A stretch of 64,000 nucleotides of DNA, taken from the sequence record NC_041878.1, one strand, 5' to 3'. The position numbers and the translations under genes are program-made. The notes under the pieces were generated by a model. The model was not told the origin of the DNA. It ran no database searches and worked only from the letters and a program-made list of their open reading frames with translations. This document shows, piece by piece, positions 1,236 to 60,797 of the stretch. Position 1 is the stretch's first letter, and each line of letters starts with the position of its first letter.

Positions 1236-2432
1236 ATGAAAGGCAAATATTTTTTCAACGATGGTCGTCAGAACATTGAAATTCAAGAGTTCGATTACGA
1301 CTATGTTCGTAACTCATTGTTAAAAGTATTTGATAAGAACGTTGCTAAGAAATATATCTTCAACGTTATTGTCAGCCGTACCTATGATGGTAACGGTATG
1401 CCGATCTTTGATGTTCGTCCGTTGAATCTGAACGACATTTTCTATGATAGTACTCGGCTCCGTGTACTGGAAATGATGTTAGATGACATTTATTTCGGAC
1501 GGATCTCAATCAAAGAACTTCCGGTTCCTCGCTTACAGCAGGAATATCAGGAGTATCTTGAAGGTCGTGCAAAACCAGTAGTACAAAATACTACACCTGA
1601 CGTTCCTGCACCAATCGTGTTCGAACGTGTAGAACTGAACGAAAACGATTCACGTCTTCCTGCTATCATTGAAATGCAGAAAGATCAAGAAAACTTTCAT
1701 CCAATGAAAGTACTCGACTGGATTGAAAACTTCGAAGTGTGTAGCCAGGAAATCACGGTTAGCATTCAGAAGTCATCCGAAGAACAGATTCGTTTAGTAC
1801 AGGTCTTGAAAACTAACAGTGAATACATCCACGGTGTTTTCAACAATCTGACCTCTGTACTGGAAAGTTTGTTCCCACTGAAGCCAAGCTTTACACAACG
1901 TCTGTTCGGTTATAAGAAAGATGTTGAAGTGAAGCAGGAAGACTTAGGTACTATTCTAAGTACTCTGCGTAATGCGGTTGCTATTGACCCTAATCGCTTT
2001 AGTGGTATCTCTGAAGTCTTTAAAGGAATTCAGAGCAATTTCTCTGACATTAAAGATACTGTAGAACACGGTATCAAAGGTTGTGAGTATGTAATCACTA
2101 CAGAAGAAGATGCGTATGAGTTCGAACTTCGTCGGGAACGTCTGATGAAGATTCGTGCAACCACGGATATTTCTGAAATGTCATTAACTACGATCAACAA
2201 AAAATTCCTTTCTGACTTGAATAAGTTGAAAGAAGTACAGGAAGTGGTTGTACCACTGCTGATTGTTAAACTTCAGAATCAGGTTTCTAAGAAAGTTGAT
2301 GACGAAACAGTTAACATCATCCGTAATCTTGCGTATCGTCAAGAAGCTCCGATCCAATCGGACTCTACCGAAGCAAGTAATGATGACAGTACTGAGCAAG
2401 GCACTGGAACGTTTAGTACGGGTCCGAAATAA
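1236..2432 (+). CDS. hypothetical coiled-coil protein upstream of TelA
   Basis: 398 aa ORF, helical C-half. Confidence 0.8.
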   Translation: MKGKYFFNDGRQNIEIQEFDYDYVRNSLLKVFDKNVAKKYIFNVIVSRTYDGNGMPIFDVRPLNLNDIFYDSTRLRVLEMMLDDIYFGRISIKELPVPRLQQEYQEYLEGRAKPVVQNTTPDVPAPIVFERVELNENDSRLPAIIEMQKDQENFHPMKVLDWIENFEVCSQEITVSIQKSSEEQIRLVQVLKTNSEYIHGVFNNLTSVLESLFPLKPSFTQRLFGYKKDVEVKQEDLGTILSTLRNAVAIDPNRFSGISEVFKGIQSNFSDIKDTVEHGIKGCEYVITTEEDAYEFELRRERLMKIRATTDISEMSLTTINKKFLSDLNKLKEVQEVVVPLLIVKLQNQVSKKVDDETVNIIRNLAYRQEAPIQSDSTEASNDDSTEQGTGTFSTGPK

Positions 2433-2444
2433 TCGAAAAAACCC

Positions 2445-2473
2445 TTGACAAATCATGTGGGTGCTGTTAGAAT
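2445..2473 (+). promoter_or_regulatory. sigma70-type promoter
   Basis: TTGACA-17-TAGAAT. Confidence 0.85.
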
Positions 2474-2524
2474 GTTTACATCAAGACGGCACTCCTAATT
2501 AACTTAGAATGAAGGATTTAAAAG

Positions 2525-3667
2525 ATGGCAATTGACGACGTTAACAATGGTTTCGAAGAAGTTAAGCCACAGCGTAAAACTGGAACTCGTAAGCGTAAAC
2601 CTGCGGCAACTAAAGCAGAACCAGTAACTATCGAACAAGAAGAATTCGCACAGAGCGAAAAACAGTTACCATCTCTGCGTGATGCAAAAGGTACTTCAAT
2701 GGAACTGACTGTAGCGAATATCCATACTTTGGGTTCCGATGCTGGTCAGAACATTGGTAAACTTTCTGAAGAAATTCTTTCTAAAGTTAAAGTTGCTGAT
2801 ACTGGTGAACTCGGTGATGGTATTTCTAATATTCTGACTTTGACTCGTAAAGTCGATATTACCCGCCTGGGTGAACAACGTAATGGTCTGCTTTCTCGTG
2901 TTTGGAATATCTTTGGTGATACCAAACAGAAAGTACTGGATCAGTTCGAAACCAGTAAAGACCAAATCGAAAAGATCACTGGCACTCTCAGTACTGGTAT
3001 TGATCGTATGCGTGGTGAAGCAGTATGGCTTGAAAATGCATATGATGCGAACATTGAATATCTGCATGAACTGGAAGATATTCTGGTAAACGTTGATGAA
3101 GTTAAAATCATTGAAGATCAGAAGTTGGCTAAACTCATGGCTGATCCTGAAACTCCAATGAACGTACTGGATGACCAGCGTATGCTTACCGATGCACTGG
3201 ATAAGCAAGCCGACAAACTTCGCCGTCTGGTACAACTGGCAAAACTGACCGCACCGCAGATTGCGTCAATGCGTAAAGTTAACATGAACACCGTTGAGAA
3301 GTTTGAATCTCTCAACACCGTTGTTATCCCAGCGTGGAAAAACAACATGAGTCTTTCTCTGATTAGTTTGCAGCAGAAGAAAGATAACGAATTGTCGAAC
3401 ATGATCGACAATGAAACAAACCGTCTGTTGAAAGACAACGCGAAAACTGTTGCACAGAACATGAAAGACGCAGCAGCGGCGAACCAACGTGGGGTAGTGG
3501 ATTTGAGTACTCTTCAGTCTATCCAGAACGATATGTTGAATGGTATCAAAGAAACCATTCGCATTGAAGAAGCTGGACGCCAAGAGCGTAAACAAGCTGC
3601 AATCGAAATGCAGAAAATGGATCAAAATCTGAAAATCGCACTTCGCGATATTGCTCAGAAAAAATAA
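2525..3667 (+). CDS. telA: toxic anion (tellurite) resistance protein TelA family
   Basis: 380 aa; LLSRVWNIFG...LDQFET and SLNTVVIPAWKNNM segments typical of TelA. Confidence 0.85.
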   Translation: MAIDDVNNGFEEVKPQRKTGTRKRKPAATKAEPVTIEQEEFAQSEKQLPSLRDAKGTSMELTVANIHTLGSDAGQNIGKLSEEILSKVKVADTGELGDGISNILTLTRKVDITRLGEQRNGLLSRVWNIFGDTKQKVLDQFETSKDQIEKITGTLSTGIDRMRGEAVWLENAYDANIEYLHELEDILVNVDEVKIIEDQKLAKLMADPETPMNVLDDQRMLTDALDKQADKLRRLVQLAKLTAPQIASMRKVNMNTVEKFESLNTVVIPAWKNNMSLSLISLQQKKDNELSNMIDNETNRLLKDNAKTVAQNMKDAAAANQRGVVDLSTLQSIQNDMLNGIKETIRIEEAGRQERKQAAIEMQKMDQNLKIALRDIAQKK

Positions 3668-3687
3668 TCCAAAAAGCAGTACTACAA

Positions 3688-3714
3688 AAGCTCCCAACAC
3701 TTGGGGGCTTTTTT
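3688..3714 (+). terminator. intrinsic terminator
   Basis: AGCTCCCAA-cac-TTGGGGGCT TTTTT. Confidence 0.8.
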
Positions 3715-3733
3715 CATATGGAGAAATAAAAAT

Positions 3734-4066
3734 ATGGATAACCTATACACTCAAGAACTACTAACTAAGCTATCAGAAATCATTTCAGAAAATGATATGG
3801 ATGATGATAAAGAAGGTAAGTACAATGATGAAGGTATCAAGTACATCACAGTTGTAGAAGGTGATTGGACAGACGAAGGTAAGTACTCTTTCTGTGACTG
3901 GACTTTCTTCTTCCCTGAACTAAATGTATATGTCTATTGCTCACAATCTCGTAGTGGTTCTTACTATAGCGATTACTACTATGACGACCCTGATTTTAGC
4001 TTTGTAGAACCATACACCGAAACGGTTGTAGTTACAAATTACCGTACTGTTAAGGTGACTGCATAA
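3734..4066 (+). CDS. hypothetical protein
   Basis: SD GGAG; start moved to MDNLY. Confidence 0.8.
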   Translation: MDNLYTQELLTKLSEIISENDMDDDKEGKYNDEGIKYITVVEGDWTDEGKYSFCDWTFFFPELNVYVYCSQSRSGSYYSDYYYDDPDFSFVEPYTETVVVTNYRTVKVTA

Positions 4067-4740
4067 TGAATCTTTTTTCTTTAGACATTGAAACACTTGG
4101 TACTCCAGAGAACTCAGGTTATGGAATCGTAATTCCGAACTATGCTATTGTTAAAATCCCTGAAGTACTAACACATGAATTAGAATGGATTTATGTTCAA
4201 CTACCAATTCAAGATCAGATTGATGTAGGTCTTAAAATGGATGCAAGTACTATGAACTTCTGGTTCGATACTTGTGCACAGGAATTCCCTCTAGCATTGT
4301 GTGAAATGCAGCAATCATTTAAACTTAAAGCACCAACGGTTCTACACTCAGATGGTGATACTCATGAATCCACCAATATTCCACTAGTCGTTAAGAATTT
4401 CTTACATGGACAGGAAGAACCAAAGTTCAATACTAAAGTCTTTGGAAATGGTTGTAACTTTGATTGTAGTATTCTACAAGAGAACCATCGAGTAATGTTC
4501 GGTGACGGTAATTTGTGGCAATATGCTGCACCAAACAATGTTCGTTCACTAAGACTTCTTCTTTCTAAAGAAGATGAAGAATTAATGAAAGATACGATTG
4601 ATCCATATCTTAGCCGGTTCTGTGATTCTATTGATGAAGTGGGTTGGATGTTTGATCTTTGTTTACATAATCCTCTGTTCGATGCGGCTAAAGAAGCGTT
4701 GTTCGTAACTTATATTATGAACTTAAAAAAATCAGCTTGA
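4066..4740 (+). CDS. DEDDh 3'-5' exo(ribo)nuclease
   Basis: SLDIETLG, GNGCNFD and HNPLFDA motifs. Confidence 0.75.
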   Translation: MNLFSLDIETLGTPENSGYGIVIPNYAIVKIPEVLTHELEWIYVQLPIQDQIDVGLKMDASTMNFWFDTCAQEFPLALCEMQQSFKLKAPTVLHSDGDTHESTNIPLVVKNFLHGQEEPKFNTKVFGNGCNFDCSILQENHRVMFGDGNLWQYAAPNNVRSLRLLLSKEDEELMKDTIDPYLSRFCDSIDEVGWMFDLCLHNPLFDAAKEALFVTYIMNLKKSA

Positions 4741-4766
4741 CAAACAGCCCCTTAACGTTGTACAAT
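4737..4766 (+). promoter_or_regulatory. sigma70-type promoter
   Basis: TTGACA-18-TACAAT. Confidence 0.7.
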
Positions 4767-4796
4767 AGCCCTGTTAACCACTAATAGGGCTAGATC

Positions 4797-5894
4797 ATGA
4801 ATTTCCTCATTATTGCTGCACCAGCGTTATTGATCATGATCATCATGAAATATAAGTACTCACATCAAATAACAACTAAGGAATTAGGTTTTCATTTCTT
4901 AGCAGTGTGCGTAAGTATTGGTATCATGATGGGAATCACTTACACAAGTTTATACGTATCAATGGCTGATACTGAAATTTTAAATGGTAAAGTACTTTCT
5001 AAATCTCGTGATGTTGAATGGTGTACTTCACAAAGTTCTTCATGTAAACATTACACATGGCATGAACGTTGTTCGTACTACACAGATAGTAAAGGTAAAC
5101 GCCAGAAGTCGTGTGAATCATATAAAGTTTTTGATTATCCATACGAAGTAGATTGGACAGTACGGACTTCAGTTGATTCACATACTATTGAACGTGTAAA
5201 CCGTCAGGGAACTAAAGTACCGCCACGTTGGGCACAAATTAATATTGGTGATCCAGCAAGTACTGAACACCGTTATATCAATTACCTTTTAGGTAATAAA
5301 GATTCTTTATTCTACGAGAATGAATACGAAAAAGAATTCACCGAAGAATACAAGAAAGAGTTACCAAATTACCCACAAGTTTATGATTATTATCGTGTAA
5401 ACCACGTAATAAATTTGACAAAGGCTGATGCCACAGGGTATAATGATTACATCAACATGGCACTGCGGGAAATGGGAGCGAGTAAACAAGTTAACATTGT
5501 ACTGATTATGTATCCTGCTACTAATGTTGATTTGGTAAAAGCAACCACAGCAAAATGGCGTGGCGGTAAAAAGAACGATGTAATTATGTTCGCTGGCTTG
5601 GATGAAGATGGTACTGTAACTAAGTTTAGTAGTACTTCATTCGGCAAGGGAATGAAAAATGAATACTTACATAGTACTTTACGAATGACTGCACTAACTG
5701 AGAAAATGTCTCTGAACTTAGTACAGTTACTTGTAAAAGACGTAAATGATAATTTCAATCGTCTTCCTAATAAGGAATTCGAATACTTGAAATATAAATT
5801 AGAACCTAGCCTTTGGGTAGTTATTTTATGCTCAATCTTAGCTGCGGTATCTTCAATCTTAGTTGGTAATTACATGAGGAAAGTTGATTTATGA
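4797..5894 (+). CDS. membrane protein (2 N-terminal + 1 C-terminal TM), TPM-like C domain
   Basis: Hydrophobic termini; WRGGKKNDVIMF segment. Confidence 0.7.
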   Translation: MNFLIIAAPALLIMIIMKYKYSHQITTKELGFHFLAVCVSIGIMMGITYTSLYVSMADTEILNGKVLSKSRDVEWCTSQSSSCKHYTWHERCSYYTDSKGKRQKSCESYKVFDYPYEVDWTVRTSVDSHTIERVNRQGTKVPPRWAQINIGDPASTEHRYINYLLGNKDSLFYENEYEKEFTEEYKKELPNYPQVYDYYRVNHVINLTKADATGYNDYINMALREMGASKQVNIVLIMYPATNVDLVKATTAKWRGGKKNDVIMFAGLDEDGTVTKFSSTSFGKGMKNEYLHSTLRMTALTEKMSLNLVQLLVKDVNDNFNRLPNKEFEYLKYKLEPSLWVVILCSILAAVSSILVGNYMRKVDL

Positions 5895-6445
5895 AAGCAG
5901 GAACAGCAGTACTTCTGTCATTCGTTGCAGTGATCGCGGTGGGTGCTTTGGGTTTTGCGGGTATGTATAAGAGTTCTTACGATACTGCAAATAATTACGA
6001 AGCAAATATCAATCGTCTGAACAAAGCAAGTGAATCGCAGCTTAGTACTTATACTTTGAAAGTACAAGAACAAGCACAAATTCCTGCTATGTATTCTGAA
6101 GATCTTCAGAAAACTATTAAGGCGTACTTCGAAGGTCGTGGTAAACAAGATGAAACATTCATCCGTTCCTTCGTAACACAGAACGTACCTAATCTGTCAC
6201 CTAAGATGTATGAAAATCTGATGGTAACAATTGATGCTGGTCGTGATGCGTTTAACAACGTACAGAAACAGAAGATCGATACCTGTTCTGACTATGATGA
6301 ATTCCGTGGTAAATTCTGGAGTAGCTTTACTCTGCCAGGGAAGTTCCCAAGCAAGAATATCGAAAAGCTCTGCCAGGTAGTTTCTGATGCACGTACTCAG
6401 AAAGCATTCGAAACTGGTGTTCAGGAAACTATTAAATTCCGCTAA
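5891..6445 (+). CDS. membrane-anchored LemA-like protein
   Basis: N-terminal TM + helical domain, coupled to preceding membrane gene; family call is inference. Confidence 0.55.
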   Translation: MKAGTAVLLSFVAVIAVGALGFAGMYKSSYDTANNYEANINRLNKASESQLSTYTLKVQEQAQIPAMYSEDLQKTIKAYFEGRGKQDETFIRSFVTQNVPNLSPKMYENLMVTIDAGRDAFNNVQKQKIDTCSDYDEFRGKFWSSFTLPGKFPSKNIEKLCQVVSDARTQKAFETGVQETIKFR

Positions 6446-6453
6446 TAGTTTAT

Positions 6454-6481
6454 AAGCTGGCCTTAGTTGGTCAGCTTTTTT
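6454..6481 (+). terminator. intrinsic terminator
   Basis: AAGCTGGCC-ttagtt-GGTCAGCTTTTTT. Confidence 0.8.
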
Positions 6482-6494
6482 AAGTAAGAAGTGC

Positions 6495-6523
6495 TTGACA
6501 AATTGAATATAAAATGTTATAGT
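6495..6523 (+). promoter_or_regulatory. sigma70-type promoter
   Basis: TTGACA-17-TATAGT. Confidence 0.8.
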
Positions 6524-6557
6524 ACTAGCAAGATATGAAATTAAGTGAGGGTTCACT

Positions 6558-6737
6558 ATGTCGTACTTAATATTAGTTCTCGCAATGAAAGCAGGTAACT
6601 TAGCTCCTACGTCTGTAACAATGAAACTTGATGTAGATGTTGATAACTGTGAACAGGTCTTTATTCCTGAAGCAAAGAAACAGTATGCGAGTACGCCTCT
6701 TACAGTAATTTCAGCAAAATGTTTTCCGACTAAGTGA
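6558..6737 (+). CDS. small hypothetical protein (59 aa, below ORF-track cutoff)
   Basis: SD GAGG, MSYLILVLAM...CFPTK*. Confidence 0.65.
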   Translation: MSYLILVLAMKAGNLAPTSVTMKLDVDVDNCEQVFIPEAKKQYASTPLTVISAKCFPTK

Positions 6738-6748
6738 GGGTTTAACAA

Positions 6749-7096
6749 ATGTGGGCGTTTCTATCGATCATGCTTCTTTGCATGGTAATAAACTTTGGAA
6801 TTTGGTACGCAGTTTCGCGTTGGTATCTTAAAGACGACTTTGTTATCATCATTGGTGATAACATGAAACGCTTCATGAAAACAATGCTAATTGCAATTGT
6901 AATTTCAATTCTGTTGTGTTCTGTTAAACTTTATAAAATGGCTTCATGTCAAACTAAAGGTTGGATTACGAATGCCAGTACTCAATACTCATGGGTAATG
7001 GATCAATGCCAGGCAAAAAATAGTACTGGAGTATACGTAGATATTGAACGTACTCGTGGTACACCTGGTGAAGAAAATCACGACACAGCACAATAA
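6749..7096 (+). CDS. membrane protein
   Basis: Two hydrophobic segments. Confidence 0.75.
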   Translation: MWAFLSIMLLCMVINFGIWYAVSRWYLKDDFVIIIGDNMKRFMKTMLIAIVISILLCSVKLYKMASCQTKGWITNASTQYSWVMDQCQAKNSTGVYVDIERTRGTPGEENHDTAQ

Positions 7097-7101
7097 TAAA
7101 T

Positions 7102-7126
7102 AAAACCCTCCTAGTGAGGGTTTTTT
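7102..7126 (+). terminator. intrinsic terminator
   Basis: AAAACCCTC-ctagt-GAGGGTTTTTT. Confidence 0.8.
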
Positions 7127-7144
7127 ATATTTTAGGAGATTTGA

Positions 7145-7777
7145 ATGCCAAAAAAATTAGTTTATGAACATGGAATTAATGATTCAGACGAACCTATATG
7201 TAAACAAGAAAAAATTAATGGTAAATGGAAGGTTATTTGGAGATGCCCAATATATACTATGTGGAGAAATATACTAGAACGATGCTATTCGCAAAAACTT
7301 AAAGATAAATTTCCAACGTATAAAGATTGTACAATTCACGAAGAATGGTTGTATTTTTCAAATTTTAAGTCATGGGTTTTAACACAACCATATCAAAACC
7401 GAGATATTGATAAAGATTTATTATATAAAAATAATAAACACTATTCCCCACATACTTGCATTTTCGTTCCTCATGAAATCAATACATTTATTTTGCAATC
7501 TTCTACCATTCGCGGAGATTATGCATTAGGTGTATCTTATAATGCTTGTAGAAAAGCAAAACCTTTTTATTCTTATATTAGCGTTGAGAATAAAAAACTT
7601 CATCTTGGCGTTTTTGATAATGAATATGAAGCACATTTAGCATGGCAGCACAAAAAAATTTATTTTTGTAACCAATACATTGAGAAATACACCGATGATA
7701 AAAATATTATTTTAGTGTTAGAAAAATATAGAGATTCGATACAAAAAGATATTGACGAAAATAGGTTTACTATATAA
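7145..7777 (+). CDS. HNH-type homing endonuclease with AP2-like DNA-binding domain
   Basis: YTMWRNILERCY, EEWLYFSNF, DIDKDLL, YSPHTCIFVP motifs; lower GC than flanks. Confidence 0.75.
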   Translation: MPKKLVYEHGINDSDEPICKQEKINGKWKVIWRCPIYTMWRNILERCYSQKLKDKFPTYKDCTIHEEWLYFSNFKSWVLTQPYQNRDIDKDLLYKNNKHYSPHTCIFVPHEINTFILQSSTIRGDYALGVSYNACRKAKPFYSYISVENKKLHLGVFDNEYEAHLAWQHKKIYFCNQYIEKYTDDKNIILVLEKYRDSIQKDIDENRFTI

Positions 7778-17924: not shown

Positions 17925-18358
17925 AATACTTTCGTGTAAATTGCGGGGATGCTTCCGGTATGTCAGAATTTTGGGAATACTTTGCATTAAAGGAATACTC
18001 AATGTCTGATGAAGATTTGATGGATGAAGCCATTTCTCTTTTCACTGAAAATAATCATTGGGTTTATTCTCTGGATTGTGACCGCCGCCGTGCAGAAGAA
18101 TTGACTGAAGAACAGTACAAAACAGGTTTGCTGTTCAATAAGATGTACCAATATCAGCATGAACTGAATGCGTTTCGTCGTGAGCACAATATCTATCCTA
18201 CTATGGATATGGCAGTACTGTTCGCAAAGCGTGATCATAAATCTGGTTATGTTCGTGTTGGTCATCCTAACATTCATAATGTTTATAAAGTGAATGCTGA
18301 TGGTAATTTCATTTTTGTATATCATCACTGGTCTGACCGTGTTGGAGTACTGAAATGA
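17921..18358 (+). CDS. hypothetical protein
   Basis: ATGA overlap coupling. Confidence 0.75.
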   Translation: MKYFRVNCGDASGMSEFWEYFALKEYSMSDEDLMDEAISLFTENNHWVYSLDCDRRRAEELTEEQYKTGLLFNKMYQYQHELNAFRREHNIYPTMDMAVLFAKRDHKSGYVRVGHPNIHNVYKVNADGNFIFVYHHWSDRVGVLK

Positions 18359-19658: not shown

Positions 19659-20017
19659 TGGAAAATATATTTGAGGGTCTAGAGTACGTTAAAAAATACG
19701 TACTCTTTGAAGATACAAAAAGTGTGTACTGGTATGATATTATTACTAATACATCAAATAACGTTGTAGTTATAAGTAATAAAAACTTCGATCCATATGT
19801 AACGTTAATTGCTGATGGCTACACACTCAAATATGATGGAACTGAATTGAAATTGACCTGTCTTATCGCAGGAAAATCATTTGATGACATTTGTGACCCA
19901 AATATTACCGAAGAATGGTTTTTCCAGTTGAGTACTATTAAAGACTTTGGTGCGTTGGAGTACATTGAAATTGAATTTGTAAAAGAAGTTTATAAAAGAT
20001 GTTTTAATACTAATTAG
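19658..20017 (+). CDS. hypothetical protein, EExxFQxxT family
   Basis: TEEWFFQLSTIKD. Confidence 0.7.
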   Translation: MENIFEGLEYVKKYVLFEDTKSVYWYDIITNTSNNVVVISNKNFDPYVTLIADGYTLKYDGTELKLTCLIAGKSFDDICDPNITEEWFFQLSTIKDFGALEYIEIEFVKEVYKRCFNTN

Positions 20018-20027
20018 GGGATTTAAT

Positions 20028-20333
20028 ATGCTTAATCCAATTTTTGAATCTATACTCAATGACGAGCGTTATGAAAGATATGACGGAATCAATGAAGTTC
20101 TGATTTTAAGTACAGTTGATTACGAAGTGAAAGTAACCAAAGAATACATGAAATTGGATAAAGTGCAATATAATATGAATTTGGTTAATCCACATCATGG
20201 AATCCCTTTACACCGCGAGACTGTTGCGGTAATCTACTATGAAACATTCCTTGCGTCAGACGACGAGGAAACATTTGGCATCACGAAAGACGATGTGAAC
20301 GCCGTTTTAAGCTATTATCGGAGTTTAGGATGA
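20028..20333 (+). CDS. hypothetical protein
   Basis: Co-oriented ORF. Confidence 0.7.
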   Translation: MLNPIFESILNDERYERYDGINEVLILSTVDYEVKVTKEYMKLDKVQYNMNLVNPHHGIPLHRETVAVIYYETFLASDDEETFGITKDDVNAVLSYYRSLG

Positions 20334-28521: not shown

Positions 28522-28547
28522 TAAGAAAAGTACTTCGGTGCTTTTAT

Positions 28548-28671
28548 CGGGAATTGGTGTAATGGCAGCACAACGTTATAACATAGATTCTTGTATATAG
28601 GAATTTCACAGCAACCAATACAATTGCATAGGGAGCCGTGAGATGAGGTTCGATTCCTTGATTCCCGACTA
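28548..28671 (+). ncRNA. tRNA-Pro-like (AGG loop) with 50-nt ACAGCAA insert in anticodon stem
   Basis: Acceptor CGGGAAT/ATTCCCG-A, D arm, T arm GGTTCGATTCC; insert 28576-28625. Confidence 0.6.
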
Positions 28672-41994: not shown

Positions 41995-42068
41995 GCCTTT
42001 GTAGCTCAGCGGTAGAGCGGGGATCTCTAAAATCCTTTGTCGTGGGTTCGAATCCCTCCATCGGCACA
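41995..42068 (+). tRNA. tRNA with CTA anticodon (amber suppressor candidate), Phe-like body
   Basis: GGGAT-CTCTAAA-ATCCT; canonical D arm; 2 acceptor and 1 T-stem mismatches. Confidence 0.7.
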
Positions 42069-42371: not shown

Positions 42372-42483
42372 GCATAAATGACGGAATTGGTAAACGTAGA
42401 GTCTGACAATAGCGAAAGCGACGATAGGACTTCGGGAGTAGCCGTGAGGTTCCCTTGTAGGTTCGAATCCTGCTTTATGCACC
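42372..42483 (+). ncRNA. class II tRNA-like RNA with anticodon loop replaced by ~22-nt insert
   Basis: GCATAAA/TTTATGC acceptor, D and T arms intact; GC-GAAA-GC in place of anticodon. Confidence 0.6.
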
Positions 42484-47722: not shown

Positions 47723-47836
47723 GCAGTGATCGTCTAGCGGCCCAGGACACGAAAAGCGATTCTTGATTAAGAATCTTACGGCATCTATAACTTTCATTTC
47801 ACGAACGTAACGTAGGTTCGAATCCTACTCACTGCT
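47723..47836 (+). tRNA. tRNA-Glu(TTC) with 41-nt insert between nt 28 and 29
   Basis: Glu-type D arm GTCTAGCGGCCCAGGAC; CG[insert 47752-47792]TTC-ATTTCAC-GAACG. Confidence 0.65.
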
Positions 47837-47859: not shown

Positions 47860-48153
47860 ATGAAAAGTATTTTATTCTTTCAATATGCAGCAACTGGTGA
47901 AGGTTGGCGTACAGAAATCCGTTTCTGTAATCAGTCAAGACTCAGTGATGAACAAGCGATAGAACAGTTTAAGCAGAAACATCACGAGTACTTTCATTGT
48001 GGTATAGAAATGCATGACATTGATGAAGCGAAGGAAGACAAACGTTTTCTGCAACATTTGCAAGAACACGTACCTGCTTTACATCGTTATGTTGTGGGAA
48101 ATCGTGGTTGTTTAATTGATATTGACTACGTTCATTACGTGAATTTCTCATAA
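47860..48153 (+). CDS. hypothetical protein
   Basis: Co-oriented ORF. Confidence 0.7.
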   Translation: MKSILFFQYAATGEGWRTEIRFCNQSRLSDEQAIEQFKQKHHEYFHCGIEMHDIDEAKEDKRFLQHLQEHVPALHRYVVGNRGCLIDIDYVHYVNFS

Positions 48154-48512: not shown

Positions 48513-48710
48513 ATGAAAGTACAATGGATCAAAATTAAAAATCCAGACGATATGCAATTCTTCGCTGGAAAGATTTATCCAAAAGATGATGCTGACTATC
48601 AGTACATCGAAGATGAATTTGGTACTCAGTACTCAGTAAGTCCTGATGGACTTAAAGAACTTCAGAATTTCGGATGGGAAATTGAGGTACAATATGAAAG
48701 TATACATTGA
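48513..48710 (+). CDS. hypothetical protein
   Basis: Co-oriented ORF. Confidence 0.7.
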   Translation: MKVQWIKIKNPDDMQFFAGKIYPKDDADYQYIEDEFGTQYSVSPDGLKELQNFGWEIEVQYESIH

Positions 48711-49059
48711 TGATATTCGTGATCCTCAAAAGTACTTGACTGCTGAACAAGCTGAAGGTATTGTATGGCTCAAAGAATGGTGGGAAGCAAAACGTTTTTT
48801 GATTGAACATTCTTCTGAAATTGAAGTAATTCATTTTGACCATTATATGGATGAACCAACTTTAACTGGTACTGATCTGTTTATGATGGTTGCGGGTGAT
48901 TGCATGTGGGGTGATAAAGAAAATTGGCCTAATGTGAAAACCATTTATCTTCATTCTTCGGATGAAGACAGTATTGAAGAATTGATGGAAAACTATGCAG
49001 AACCTATGCATAAGGCTGGTGTAGAAGTTATCAATAATAGTCAGAGGAATAATTACTGA
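48694..49059 (+). CDS. cyclic-phosphate-processing receiver domain protein
   Basis: KVYIDDIRDP...IHFDHYM...TGTD...IYLHSS. Confidence 0.7.
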   Translation: MKVYIDDIRDPQKYLTAEQAEGIVWLKEWWEAKRFLIEHSSEIEVIHFDHYMDEPTLTGTDLFMMVAGDCMWGDKENWPNVKTIYLHSSDEDSIEELMENYAEPMHKAGVEVINNSQRNNY

Positions 49060-49415
49060 TGAAAGTATATGTTGATGATATTCGTAATCCAGAAAACCAT
49101 CTCAGTGCTGAACAGGCAGAAGGAATCCACTGGAAAAAAGAATGGTGGGAAGCAAAGAACTTTATCTTCGATAACTGCGAAGAAATTGAAACTATCCATC
49201 TGGACAATTTCTTAGGTGATCGTACTCATACTGGTGCTGATATACTTCGTATGGTAACTCGTAGTTTAAAACGCGGTACGTTCCCTAAACTGAAACAAAT
49301 TTATCTTCACAGTTCTGACAAAGAAGTTGTGAATAACTTATATAACTCTCAGATTGAGTGTTGTAAAGAAGCAGGTGTTGAGTTAATTAAAAACTCACGT
49401 CCTAATCGTACTTAA
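49059..49415 (+). CDS. cyclic-phosphate-processing receiver domain protein (tandem paralog)
   Basis: KVYVDDIRNP...IHLDNFLG..TGAD...IYLHSS. Confidence 0.7.
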   Translation: MKVYVDDIRNPENHLSAEQAEGIHWKKEWWEAKNFIFDNCEEIETIHLDNFLGDRTHTGADILRMVTRSLKRGTFPKLKQIYLHSSDKEVVNNLYNSQIECCKEAGVELIKNSRPNRT

Positions 49416-49423
49416 TAAAATAT

Positions 49424-49548
49424 GGCGAGTTAGCTCAGTGGTAGAGCACGTATGAAACCCAGGATTCCTGTACTTGAATCCCGCAGCAACTATACTCTCA
49501 AGCCTTTTAAGCTCGTGGTCATTGGTTCGAATCCAATACTCGCCACCA
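49424..49548 (+). tRNA. tRNA-Lys(TTT) with 50-nt insert between nt 28 and 29
   Basis: Removing 49451-49500 leaves a 75-nt cloverleaf: CGAGC-CTTTTAA-GCTCG, ACCA. Confidence 0.75.
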
Positions 49549-53520: not shown

Positions 53521-53549
53521 TGAAACGATAGAAATTTTTGTGGTATAAT
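53521..53549 (+). promoter_or_regulatory. class-B promoter
   Basis: TGAAAC-17-TATAAT before permuted tRNA mimic. Confidence 0.8.
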
Positions 53550-53566
53550 ATAGTACATAAGGCAAC

Positions 53567-53687
53567 GGAATCTTACAGCAAAAATAATTAATTTTTGATG
53601 AAAACAAAACGATGGCGGTTCGAATCCCCACCCACGATTTTGCCTTATTTTAAGTGGGAGCATGGTGCTGGATAAACAAGAGATTCC
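53567..53687 (+). ncRNA. circularly permuted tRNA mimic (ACAGCAA family)
   Basis: GGAATC-TTACAGCAA, T arm, CCCAC/GTGGG closed acceptor, D-like hairpin, GATTCC. Confidence 0.7.
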
Positions 53688-53709
53688 AGATTTTAATTTA
53701 GAAAATTTT

Positions 53710-53738
53710 TGAAACGAATCAAAAATTTGTGGTATAAT
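53710..53738 (+). promoter_or_regulatory. class-B promoter
   Basis: TGAAAC-17-TATAAT. Confidence 0.8.
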
Positions 53739-53755
53739 AAACGTATTAGCAACAC

Positions 53756-53873
53756 GAAATCTTACAGCAAACAATATCTTATATTTTTTATGCGAAAAAA
53801 ACGATGTGGTTCGAATCCACAACAACCATGTTGCTATGTTGGTTGTGCATGGGGCTAGAAAACAAAAGATTTC
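53756..53873 (+). ncRNA. circularly permuted tRNA mimic (ACAGCAA family)
   Basis: GAAATCTT-ACAGCAA; TGTGG-TTCGAAT-CCACA; ACAACC/GGTTGT; AAGATTTC. Confidence 0.75.
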
Positions 53874-53907
53874 AGTTTTTTTAATTAAGACAAATAGGAC
53901 AACGGCA

Positions 53908-54232: not shown

Positions 54233-54338
54233 AAGAATCGCACAGCAAACATCAATCTTATATATTTCATTTGGCGAAAACACCTTCGGTTCGATTCCGA
54301 TTTACCACTGGATGTGGGGATAGAAAAACACGATTCTT
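54233..54338 (+). ncRNA. ACAGCAA family RNA with T arm and short closed acceptor
   Basis: AAGAATCG-CACAGCAA...TCGG-TTCGATT-CCGA...CGATTCTT. Confidence 0.65.
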
Positions 54339-54781: not shown

Positions 54782-54845
54782 TAGAATCTAACAGCAAACC
54801 TTATTTTATCAAACCTAACCTTTGAAGCGAAAATAATAGATTCTA
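54782..54845 (+). ncRNA. minimal ACAGCAA family RNA
   Basis: TAGAATCTA-ACAGCAA...TAGATTCTA. Confidence 0.6.
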
Positions 54846-56310: not shown

Positions 56311-56448
56311 GGAATCTAACAGCAATTAAAAATGTTAACTAAAAAATAGCTGCCGCAAGGCTTGTAGGTTCAAGTCCTACAAATTATGTCTTCATGAATA
56401 ATGATGGTGAAAATGGTAAACACGGCTATTAACTAAACAATGGATTCC
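56311..56448 (+). ncRNA. circularly permuted class II (Leu-like) tRNA mimic, ACAGCAA family
   Basis: GGAATC-TAACAGCAA; ATAGC; CC-GCAA-GG variable arm; TGTAGG-TTCAAGT-CCTACA; D arm GGTGAAAATGGTAAACAC; GCTAT; GGATTCC. Confidence 0.8.
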
Positions 56449-59320: not shown

Positions 59321-59387
59321 TAGAATCTAACAGCAAACACATTTAAACATATATTTTTGGGATATAAAACGTTAAAAACGGATTCTA
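59321..59387 (+). ncRNA. minimal ACAGCAA family RNA
   Basis: TAGAATC-TAACAGCAA...TATAT-TTTTGGG-ATATA...GATTCTA. Confidence 0.6.
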
Positions 59388-59648: not shown

Positions 59649-59653
59649 AAATT

Positions 59654-59709
59654 TAGAATCTAACAGCAATTAAAACTCATTTGGATAATATGAAAACCGA
59701 TAGATTCTA
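59654..59709 (+). ncRNA. minimal ACAGCAA family RNA (near-identical to 60718-60772)
   Basis: TAGAATCTAACAGCAATTAAAACTCATTTGGATAATATGAAAA...TAGATTCTA. Confidence 0.65.
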
Positions 59710-59715
59710 GTCTTT

Positions 59716-60710: not shown

Positions 60711-60717
60711 CAGAATT

Positions 60718-60772
60718 TAGAATCTAACAGCAATTAAACTCATTTGGATAATATGAAAAACAATAGATTCTA
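60718..60772 (+). ncRNA. minimal ACAGCAA family RNA
   Basis: Direct repeat of 59654-59709. Confidence 0.65.
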
Positions 60773-60797
60773 GTACTTTTTTAGCTAAGAGACAAAT

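Follow-up and report, generated by a model that had tools for sequence, protein, structure and literature searches.

A stem-plus-ACAGCAA RNA module in a jumbo phage tRNA-Lys(UUU) gene and its genomic coupling to a predicted Ro60-like protein

Bacterial Y RNAs of the YrlA type (RF02553) are tRNA-shaped RNAs that act together with a ring-shaped protein of the Ro60 fold. Ro60 binds the terminal stem of a Y RNA together with the adjacent conserved strand (PMC4201824, PMC12135203), and in Mycobacterium smegmatis YrlA is opened by RNase P, receives a CCA end and stays bound to Rsr as two pieces (PMC4201824). Here we describe an interrupted tRNA-Lys(UUU) gene in a stretch of 64,000 nucleotides (nt) from the Pectobacterium jumbo phage vB_PcaM_CBB (NC_041878.1; hereafter CBB), which was analysed at its full length and is called the window below (window position 48000 is record position 296000). 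The insert of this gene corresponds to no known type of intron; it is a copy of a stem-plus-ACAGCAA RNA module that occurs repeatedly. The closest known system is Ro60 with its tRNA-like YrlA RNAs, and the gene most likely specifies a tRNA-shaped Y RNA of a kind so far undescribed; the module family is found neither in Rfam nor in the searchable literature on phage tRNA introns, DUF2828 and ACAGCAA-type Y RNAs.

Several likenesses connect the phage family with YrlA and Ro60 (RF02553; PMC4201824, PMC12135203). In both, a tRNA-shaped RNA goes with a ring-shaped protein whose fold, predicted in the phage case, is that of Ro60 with a vWA domain; a terminal stem and an adjacent conserved single-stranded motif stand where the anticodon stem would be; a tRNA-like domain with T arm, D arm and acceptor-like stem is present; and RNA ligase genes are near, as rsr-yrlA-rtcBA in Salmonella and gp181-gp183 in CBB. 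The YrlA topology itself is shared by circularly permuted members in the mycobacteriophage Faith1 and in the metagenomic contig L185, and by window units at 53.6-53.9 kb. Because RNase P opens the M. smegmatis YrlA and CCA is added, that RNA becomes topologically like the CBB gene. The systems also differ. The partner is here a DUF2828/DUF7788 protein, not a Pfam TROVE protein; the CBB Lys gene has ordinary tRNA ends, an encoded CCA and a complete anticodon stem-loop, the last of which is absent from YrlA; its module stem is capped by an 8-nt loop, and only in stand-alone units do the RNA's own 5' and 3' ends form the stem; and many small units occur in the phage family, unlike in YrlA systems. 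The Rfam YrlA model, with a gathering threshold of 69 bits, scored 33.3 bits in L185 and gave an end-to-end but weak alignment of 21.7 bits with the permuted tRNA unit of Faith1; it matched nothing in the window.

A second, unexpected resemblance is to the Class I RNAs of Dictyostelium (RF01414, PMC7919456). These RNAs of 42-65 nt have a short end-joining stem that is variable with many compensatory changes, and a conserved unpaired 11-nt CCUUACAGCAA directly after the 5' stem strand; the small phage units have both this architecture and this motif. Class I RNAs end in CUGU, and the phage stems are trailed by CUGUAC or GUACUU. The Class I model scored 26-36 bits with the L185 units, below its gathering threshold of 41.5, and had no match among the window units. 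Unlike the phage units, Class I RNAs are eukaryotic and have DUSE promoters; no Ro-like partner is known for them, the reported binder being Rnp1A/CIBP, and they have been reported as unique to dictyostelids (PMC7919456). As a speculative extension, the same type of ribonucleoprotein could be ancient and cross-kingdom, with the Class I RNAs as its eukaryotic RNA partners. Unexplained small stable RNAs among phage tRNA genes are also represented by rnaC and rnaD of T4 (species 1 and 2), the former with a T arm and a tRNA-like 3' end; homology to them was rejected, as neither the stem-ACAGCAA module nor sequence similarity was found.

Anatomy of the interrupted tRNA-Lys(UUU) gene

The gene occupies 125 nt of the + strand (49424-49548), and a 50-nt insert at 49451-49500 separates nt 28 from nt 29 of the tRNA. 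The 5' part of 27 nucleotides comprises the acceptor strand GGCGAGU, the D arm GCUC/GAGC and then A-C-G, with C27 and G28 opening the anticodon stem. The insert reads, in order, UAUGAAACCCA, GGAUUC, CUGUACUU, GAAUCC, CG, CAGCAAC and UAUACUCUCA, and the 3' part continues with AGC, CUUUUAA, GCU, CG, UGGUC, the T arm AUUGG-UUCGAAU-CCAAU, ACUCGCC, the discriminator A and an encoded CCA. A contiguous anticodon stem of 5 base pairs (bp), a 7-nt loop and a total of ~76 nt are obtained only once the flanks are joined. Joined in silico, the flanks form a 75-nt cloverleaf of -29.6 kcal/mol (z = -4.2; none of 200 shuffled sequences folded equally well), which aligns with ordinary phage tRNA-Lys genes without a gap over the junction. 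The Rfam tRNA model (RF00005) bridges the insert with 50.2 bits against a threshold of 29, accommodating 63 nt where 13 are expected. ARAGORN makes no call for 49424-49548, and the RefSeq label of tRNA-Phe (GAA) is a mis-annotation that results from the GAA lying inside the insert.

The original prediction for this stretch had located the insert at these 50 positions and proposed that its deletion yields a canonical 75-nt tRNA-Lys, and direct reading bore this out base for base; its remark that the site at nt 28/29 is unlike the anticodon-loop site of bacterial tRNA introns is correct as well. It had further held that no other Lys tRNA lies within the window, which is true by both ARAGORN and Rfam; yet CBB has an uninterrupted tRNA-Lys(UUU) gene 1.8 kb past the window end, and the two Lys genes are strongly divergent from each other. 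A search for an empty-site allele of the interrupted gene found none, the homologues recovered being generic tRNA-Lys.

Two additional pairings were considered for the insert and rejected. In the minimum-free-energy fold, CAGC of the motif pairs with the 3' strand of the anticodon stem, and this pairing shows no covariation in the orthologues of the phages BF and Yen. A closing helix between the insert ends gave a weak signal only, positions 4-5 being paired with -4/-5 in 15/19 and 12/19 sequences against ~42% expected.

The module family and its Ro-like protein partner

Interrupted orthologues were found in GAP32, Serratia phage BF, Erwinia pEa_SNUABM phages, Yersinia phages fHe-Yen9-03 and fHe-Yen9-04 (Yen9-04 below), Kaldavass and XbC2, and the more distant T4-like Vibrio phage D479 has at least six interrupted genes. 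A viral contig collection was also scanned. A first scan with TTGAATCNNNCAGCAAC was discarded, as all 118 of its 118 matches were chance matches without tRNA context; with the 5' exon plus the conserved core as anchor, the scan returned 69 loci, ~40 of them genuine. Of 35 non-redundant cases, 26 showed a perfect 5-bp stem with a 7-nt loop once the insert was removed at exactly nt 28/29, and the anticodons restored in this way include Lys UUU, Asn GUU, Arg UCU and CCU, Ile UAU, and Thr UGU and GGU. From 18 aligned sequences we made a covariance model, which gave 95 matches in the phage and contig sequences scanned, often several per contig; some of these matches carry the module at nt 31/32 instead of 28/29. 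In the contig L188 (2500-3200), an HNH homing-endonuclease open reading frame (ORF) of 157 amino acids has also invaded a module-bearing tRNA gene, in which the anticodon arm has a degenerate duplicate.

Across the family the insert measures 41-65 nt. Its 5' linker is A-rich and usually starts with UA; the stem of 5-9 bp is almost wholly different in sequence between lineages, with an invariant G as the first base of the cap loop; and the stem is followed by 2-4 nt, by an invariant C-N-G-C-A inside (YUA)CNGCAAY, and by an A/U-rich tail of 7-16 nt. In the 18-sequence alignment 92% of the cells are paired, compared with 59% in column shuffles and 32-46% with slid partners, and compensatory double changes occur at 8/8 pairs of the module stem and 3/3 pairs of the inner anticodon stem. 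Compensatory changes are also seen in the acceptor and T stems of the interrupted orthologues, from the jumbo phages of Enterobacterales to the T4-like Vibrio phage. G-U pairs on the module strand indicate that the structure is kept at the level of RNA, not DNA.

The inner anticodon stem of the Lys orthologues shows covariation (AGC/GCU in CBB, ACA/UGU in BF, ACU/AGU in Yen9-04), and the residual loop is not always that of Lys, being AUGAUAA in Yen9-04 and CCGUUAA in D479. In addition, CBB, BF, Yen9-04 and D479 each encode uninterrupted tRNA-Lys(UUU) and tRNA-Glu(UUC). Because a normal tRNA-Lys(UUU) is present and some orthologues have non-Lys or non-canonical loops, we argue that decoding is not the conserved trait. 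In Yen9-04 (sequence L005), the loop of the Lys orthologue at 20001-20121 is AUGAUAA (anticodon GAU), the stem being changed in a compensatory way, and the Glu orthologue at 18168-18281 has the loop AUUCAAC (anticodon UCA), so that the tRNA body is conserved and the 'anticodon' drifts.

The insert had been treated as a one-off in the original prediction, and this did not hold: it belongs to one of at least four module-bearing tRNA-like genes of the window, which contains stand-alone units as well. With up to two mismatches, GAATCTNACAGCAA occurs 16 times in the window, always on the + strand, against 2.2 occurrences expected by chance. A scan for the motif plus a stem found 15 units on the + strand (4.3 in shuffles) and 3 on the - strand (3.5 in shuffles), the latter being the chance level. 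In total, the window holds 4 tRNA-embedded copies of the module and ~10 stand-alone units on the + strand, among them at least 4 larger ones with T-arm-like hairpins and 4 small ones; most are intergenic, and Rfam matches none of the stand-alone units. The small units have payloads of 30-45 nt, and the four of the window share the form (U)UAGAAUCUA-ACAGCAA(A/U)(C/U)...UAGAUUCUA(G). The sequence that trails the stem of the stand-alone units, (C)UGUA(C/U)UU or GUACUUU, is that of the loop of the tRNA-Lys module.

In other phages, stand-alone units lie beside the gene for a Ro-like protein. Directly after this gene, Faith1 has three tandem units, each consisting of a 7-8 nt stem strand, ACAGCAAY, a payload, a perfectly complementary stem strand and a GUAA-type spacer. 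The payload of the middle unit is a circularly permuted tRNA, in which the anticodon hairpin CCA-CUGUUAA-UGG comes first, followed by the T arm, a loop-closed acceptor stem and a D arm with ...GAGCGCG|UAUGCAAAA at its end. Two units were found beside the Ro-like gene of Campylobacter phage CP30A, three at 74-337 nt upstream of that of Listeria phage LP-125, two inside the tRNA cluster adjoining that of Felixounavirus JH2, and five beside that of L185 (3900-4480), where one payload is again a circularly permuted tRNA. In the units of Faith1, L185, CP30A and LP-125, the motif of the tRNA-Lys module comes after the 5' stem strand. The permuted payload of L185 runs from the 3' half through a capped acceptor stem to the 5' half; arrays of five stem-ACAGCAA units stand next to the Ro-like gene in both L185 and L189, and ARAGORN finds no tRNAs on either contig. 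Three transcripts of very high abundance, left without explanation, have been reported from a Listeria phage less than 2 kb upstream of its Ro-like gene, with the speculation that they might be Y RNAs (PMC12282133); the three units predicted in LP-125, a sister phage, fit this description.

The protein was recognised by clustering all ORFs around the genuine module loci without prior assumption. One neighbour dominated, a DUF2828/DUF7788 protein of ~515 amino acids that was present at 30 loci in 19 of 29 independent lineages, usually less than 1 kb from module-bearing tRNAs. The YrlA layout, with the RNA within ~4 kb of the Ro60 gene on the same strand, is seen for module-bearing tRNAs or units of Faith1, CP30A, LP-125, JH2 and 19 of the 29 metagenomic lineages, but not for the Lys gene of CBB. 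Every isolate with interrupted Lys or Glu orthologues also encodes the protein. Pfam recognises DUF2828 and DUF7788 only and not TROVE. The protein is present in ~711 phage records, and its name among phage annotators is 'Ro-like' or 'Ro sixty-related' RNA-binding protein; the CBB copy is gp183 (CBB_183, record 102737-104251). The AlphaFold model of the partner protein (predicted local distance difference test score of 81) consists of alpha-helical repeats and, after them, an alpha/beta part. When it was compared with the PDB by Foldseek, the five best matches were all Ro60/TROVE structures over the full length, with E values of 1.6e-8 to 7e-6, including Ro60 of Thermus phage phiLo (E 1.6e-8), RNA-bound Xenopus Ro60 (E 2e-6, template modelling score 0.52) and Deinococcus Rsr (E 7e-6). 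The modelled fold is Ro60-like, and the protein is predicted to have the Ro60 architecture of a HEAT-repeat ring and a C-terminal vWA domain; the D-x-S-G-S motif (MIDAS) is invariant.

CBB_183 has been found by mass spectrometry in purified CBB virions (PMC5259590), and so has a Ro-like homologue, CKA15_055, in virions of the Listeria phage CKA15 (PMC12282133). Detection in the virions of two unrelated phages suggests that the Ro-like protein, perhaps with its RNAs, is packaged.

The gene for CBB_183 adjoins that for gp181, an Rnl2-type RNA ligase (PF09414 plus an OB domain), with only an inserted HNH gene, gp182, between them. The gp181-gp182-gp183 cluster lies outside the window, at 100739-104251 of the CBB record (1440-4952 of sequence L195), and near gp183 are also gp188, a ribosome hibernation factor, and gp192, a CCA-adding enzyme with 2',3'-cyclic phosphodiesterase activity. 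In LP-125, an RtcB 'tRNA-splicing ligase' gene (6355-7566 of sequence L198) is found 1.3 kb downstream of the DUF2828 gene, an arrangement that echoes rsr-yrlA-rtcBA of Salmonella. An 'RNA ligase' near the interrupted cluster of Vibrio phage D479 was rejected as a candidate, because it is the Acb1 anti-CBASS phosphodiesterase.

Upstream of the tRNA-Lys gene, two cyclic-phosphate receiver (cREC) genes had been reported in the original prediction, and both ORFs indeed match PF20274, with 39 and 45 bits against a cutoff of 27. The tRNA-Lys gene starts 9 nt after the stop codon of the second cREC gene, and a promoter scan found no promoter of its own. The cREC pair, whose products are predicted to process cyclic-phosphate RNA ends, is conserved beside the Lys gene in GAP32, BF and Yen9-04. 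As general partners of the module the cREC genes were dismissed, since jackhmmer found cREC only in the clade of CBB, GAP32, BF and Yen.

A Y-like ribonucleoprotein and competing explanations

The reading that we favour, with a probability of about 55%, is that the module of tRNA-Lys is retained and serves as a binding site for the Ro-like protein, so that the gene would specify the RNA of a tRNA-shaped, Y-like ribonucleoprotein. Because the stand-alone units share its architecture, the CBB insert corresponds to the terminal stem of a Y-like RNA with the adjacent motif, and the CG-CAGCAAC motif is proposed as the putative contact site of the Ro-like protein. The CBB tRNA-Lys has a capped stem and an open acceptor end, and the reverse is true in Faith1; the two forms are circular permutations of each other, and tandem duplication of a permuted unit could have converted one topology into the other. 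As the CBB gene is a circular permutation of Y-like parts, its most likely product would be a 125-nt, tRNA-Lys-shaped Y-like RNA. The module would be kept as a side arm on the anticodon stem in a three-way junction, the ends of the RNA would be processed as in tRNA, and CBB_183 would bind it through the stem and the ACAGCAA element. The resulting ribonucleoprotein would present the tRNA-Lys body and anticodon loop, and by analogy with Ro60, Y RNAs and ligases it may act in tRNA quality control, in repair, or in engaging tRNA-directed enzymes. The presence of a ligase gene nearby, the cREC genes and the variety of anticodon loops on display point toward tRNA damage, repair or surveillance. One option in the original prediction was that the RNA is tethered to a protein, and this has gained real support, as the module family of the insert is genomically coupled to a predicted Ro60-like RNA-binding protein.

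Several observations weigh against this reading. The whole unspliced 125-nt RNA folds no better than shuffled sequence (z = -1.0), and the perfect stems and canonical loops restored in most family members, with many different anticodons, are what a true intron would leave. The motif, ACAGCAA or (YUA)CNGCAAY, is unlike the GNCGAAN0-1G of bacterial Y RNAs (PMC4201824). A profile search linked the DUF2828 protein to Ro60 of the PDB only weakly (E 0.03), which is why structure comparison was needed. In CBB the Ro-like gene is ~195 kb from the tRNA-Lys gene, so that adjacency is found only in other lineages. The association could also be overestimated, since Ro-like genes tend to adjoin clusters of ordinary tRNAs, JH2 being an example.

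If a Y-like ribonucleoprotein is formed, the overlong phage tRNAs that are labelled 'pseudo' or 'undetermined' or are mis-typed would gain a coherent explanation, and the DUF2828 'Ro-like' protein of 711 phage records would gain a candidate RNA partner with a defined motif. The mimicry of tRNA by Y RNAs would be extended to complete tRNAs with real anticodon arms and CCA ends, raising the questions of whether such RNAs are charged, engage anticodon nucleases or serve as ligase substrates. In addition, the very abundant transcripts next to the Ro-like gene of Listeria phage would have a candidate identity.

Among the alternatives, a true protein-dependent intron is the strongest, although we consider it only a tentative possibility. 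The module would be excised at two helix junctions and the nick at nt 28/29 sealed by a phage RNA ligase, giving a functional tRNA-Lys(UUU) of 75-76 nt, with the Ro-like protein as a platform or chaperone that recognises the stem and ACAGCAA; in permuted units, the payload would be circularised and then opened at the acceptor stem to give a tRNA. As with the known introns of tRNA genes (group I, bulge-helix-bulge, permuted or split genes), joining the flanks restores a canonical tRNA, and permuted forms exist here too. Removal restores 5-bp stems and 7-nt loops for Lys, Asn, Asp, Arg, Ile, Thr and Glu with apt nucleotides at positions 37 and 38, and the spliced form folds as a strong cloverleaf. 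Rnl2-type ligases prefer nicks in duplex RNA, and a break at nt 28/29 is such a nick; the Ro-like gene adjoins a ligase gene of this type (PF09414) in CBB and has RtcB near it in LP-125, and beside the Lys gene lie the cREC genes, whose products are predicted processors of cyclic-phosphate RNA ends. No candidate for the endonuclease was found in this analysis, however, and the bacterial hosts are not known to have a tRNA splicing endonuclease. The junction nucleotides are unconserved and merely A/U-rich, and since the tail after the motif varies from 7 to 16 nt, an intron would have no obvious measuring mechanism. Moreover, the small stand-alone units with their 30-45-nt payloads hold no tRNA to release, uninterrupted Lys-UUU and Glu-UUC genes are already present in the phage, and some orthologues would leave non-canonical loops (a 10-nt loop, C33, AUAGGGA).

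The insert also departs from the described intron classes. Group I introns of tRNA genes lie in the anticodon loop, exceed 200 nt and have a conserved P1-P9 core; this one lies in the stem at nt 28/29, measures 50 nt and has no Rfam match at E values up to 10. Archaeal and eukaryal introns form a bulge-helix-bulge, with 3-nt bulges flanking a 4-bp helix, and by inspection no 4-bp helix can be drawn at the splice sites, where there is a weak tendency to 2-3 bp between intron nt 4-5 and -4/-5. The 'enigmatic introns' of Lak megaphages are another class, located at position 37/38, 80-115 nt long, with an internal T arm and without CAGCAA.

A broader form of this idea, which is rather speculative, is that the module, the predicted Ro60-like DUF2828 protein and the adjacent RNA ligase make up a protein-guided system for cutting and joining RNA that excises modules from interrupted tRNAs, seals the nick in the anticodon stem and circularises permuted tRNAs. 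If true, it would be a phage-encoded tRNA splicing pathway in bacteria, delivering tRNA-Lys and other tRNAs on demand.

It seems unlikely that the RNA serves to divert anticodon nucleases (PrrC, RloC, PARIS AriB and others) as a decoy or sponge, or is a nuclease-resistant reserve of tRNA-Lys. This explanation goes back to the original prediction and is itself compatible with a retained module and a bound protein and hence with the favoured model. Among the loops displayed by the module-bearing tRNAs (Lys, Glu, Asn, Asp, Arg, Tyr-like) are known targets of anticodon nucleases, the genes add further copies to the normal isoacceptors, and the neighbourhood has an RNA-repair theme. On the other hand, many family members, namely the small units, are without any anticodon arm, the X-type AUAGGGA loops match no known nuclease target, and the family occurs in phages of very dissimilar hosts (Mycobacterium, Listeria and Campylobacter). 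The phage tRNAs known to escape anticodon nucleases, such as T5 tRNA-Lys facing PARIS (PMC11464382) and anticodon-loop variants (PMC10264068), likewise include an extra tRNA-Lys(UUU) in a large tRNA cluster; they differ in being of ordinary length and in escaping the nuclease by base changes, whereas the element described here is a structured module tied to an RNA-binding protein.

A selfish or decaying insertion is improbable; the module would then be a small mobile element, spread perhaps together with HNH homing endonucleases, that has left redundant tRNA genes as pseudogenes. Several module-bearing genes are annotated 'pseudo', some residual loops are degenerate, and HNH genes occur nearby, g436 of Yen9-04 directly downstream of an orthologue and an HNH ORF inside the gene of L188. 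Yet both the jumbo phages of Enterobacterales and a T4-like phage of Vibrio have retained orthologues, with compensation in the stems of the acceptor, T arm, anticodon arm and module, the elements occur exclusively on one strand, some stand-alone units have promoters of their own, and the coupling to one protein family is consistent. Least credible is a small self-cleaving or self-splicing ribozyme that removes itself: the length of 41-65 nt is within the range of small ribozymes and a conserved stem goes with an invariant core, but cmscan of 49440-49515 against Rfam gave no match at E values up to 10, the junction layout is by inspection unlike the hammerhead, hairpin, twister and pistol cores, and the same stem and motif simply close stand-alone RNAs.

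Features of the window

Coordinates of the parts of the tRNA-Lys gene, of the other units and of the upstream genes are collected in Table 1.

Table 1. Parts of the interrupted tRNA-Lys(UUU) gene, other module-bearing genes and stand-alone units, and cREC genes in the window
Feature	Position	Strand	Basis or remarks
tRNA-Lys 5' part (nt 1-28)	49424..49450	+	direct reading; Rfam tRNA alignment
Module 5' linker UAUGAAACCCA	49451..49461	+	A-rich, differs between lineages
Module stem GGAUUC/GAAUCC with cap CUGUACUU	49462..49481	+	compensatory changes at all 8 stem pairs, 18 sequences
Unpaired motif CG-CAGCAAC	49482..49490	+	family consensus YUA-C-N-GCA-A-Y; C.GCA invariant in alignment
Module tail UAUACUCUCA	49491..49500	+	A/U-rich; 7-16 nt across family
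tRNA-Lys 3' part (nt 29-76)	49501..49548	+	direct reading; Rfam alignment; folding of joined flanks
X-type module-bearing tRNA-like gene, residual loop AUAGGGA	28547..28668	+	covariance model match
tRNA-Glu(UUC) with 41-nt module at 47752-47792, between nt 28 and 29	47723..47836	+	covariance model; orthologue comparison
Fourth module-bearing tRNA-like gene, odd 10-nt residual loop AUAUAUGAAA	54661..54779	+	Rfam and annotation
Stand-alone Y-like RNA gene	53567..53687	+	TGGTATAAT promoter, stem GGAAUCUU/GAGAUUCC, then ACAGCAAA
Stand-alone Y-like RNA gene, YrlA-like topology	53756..53873	+	TGGTATAAT promoter, stem GAAAUCUU/AAGAUUUC, then ACAGCAAA
Stand-alone unit with T-arm-like hairpin, directly after tRNA-Tyr	54233..54338	+	motif-plus-stem scan
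Small 64-nt unit UAGAAUCUA-ACAGCAAAC...UAGAUUCUA, directly after the fourth module-bearing gene	54782..54845	+	motif-plus-stem scan
Stand-alone unit with T arm GUAGG-UUCAAGU-CCUAC, directly after tRNA-Ile	56311..56448	+	motif-plus-stem scan
Small 67-nt stand-alone unit	59321..59387	+	motif-plus-stem scan
Small 58-nt unit UUAGAAUCUA-ACAGCAAUU...UAGAUUCUAG, just before tRNA-Gln	59653..59710	+	motif-plus-stem scan
Small 57-nt unit, near-duplicate of 59653-59710	60717..60773	+	motif-plus-stem scan
Two paralogous cREC_REC genes in tandem	48646..49059 and 49059..49415	+	Pfam PF20274

The overlong tRNAs of the window were first flagged by Rfam and the record annotation, except for the X-type gene, which was detected by our covariance model only and is called neither by ARAGORN nor by RefSeq, nor by Rfam at the gathering threshold. 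Serratia phage BF and Vibrio phage D479 have exactly the same loop, AUAGGGA, and the metagenomic contig L186 has the near-identical AUAGGGU; taken as an anticodon loop, AUAGGGA would give AGG with G37. The fourth module-bearing gene is mis-annotated by RefSeq as tRNA-Ser (AGA), the supposed anticodon being inside the module.

In the region 53540-53880 (+) lie two genes for small RNAs; both have an extended -10 promoter TGGTATAAT of their own, a terminal stem, ACAGCAAA and a D-like arm. In the first of them, the payload consists of a T-arm-like hairpin, a capped hairpin and the D-like arm; the second contains the T arm UGUGG-UUCGAAU-CCACA and a capped 7-bp acceptor-like hairpin, and a U-run comes after the unit.

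Two further tRNA or tRNA-like genes of the window were noted. At 42372-42481 (+), a 110-nt gene with a long variable arm (Rfam, 37 bits) has a different insert in its anticodon region; this insert includes a GNRA-type hairpin GCGAAAGC and is not the ACAGCAA module. At 41995-42067 (+), a tRNA with the anticodon CUA (an amber suppressor, 'Pyl' in ARAGORN) is also annotated in BF and Yen9-04.

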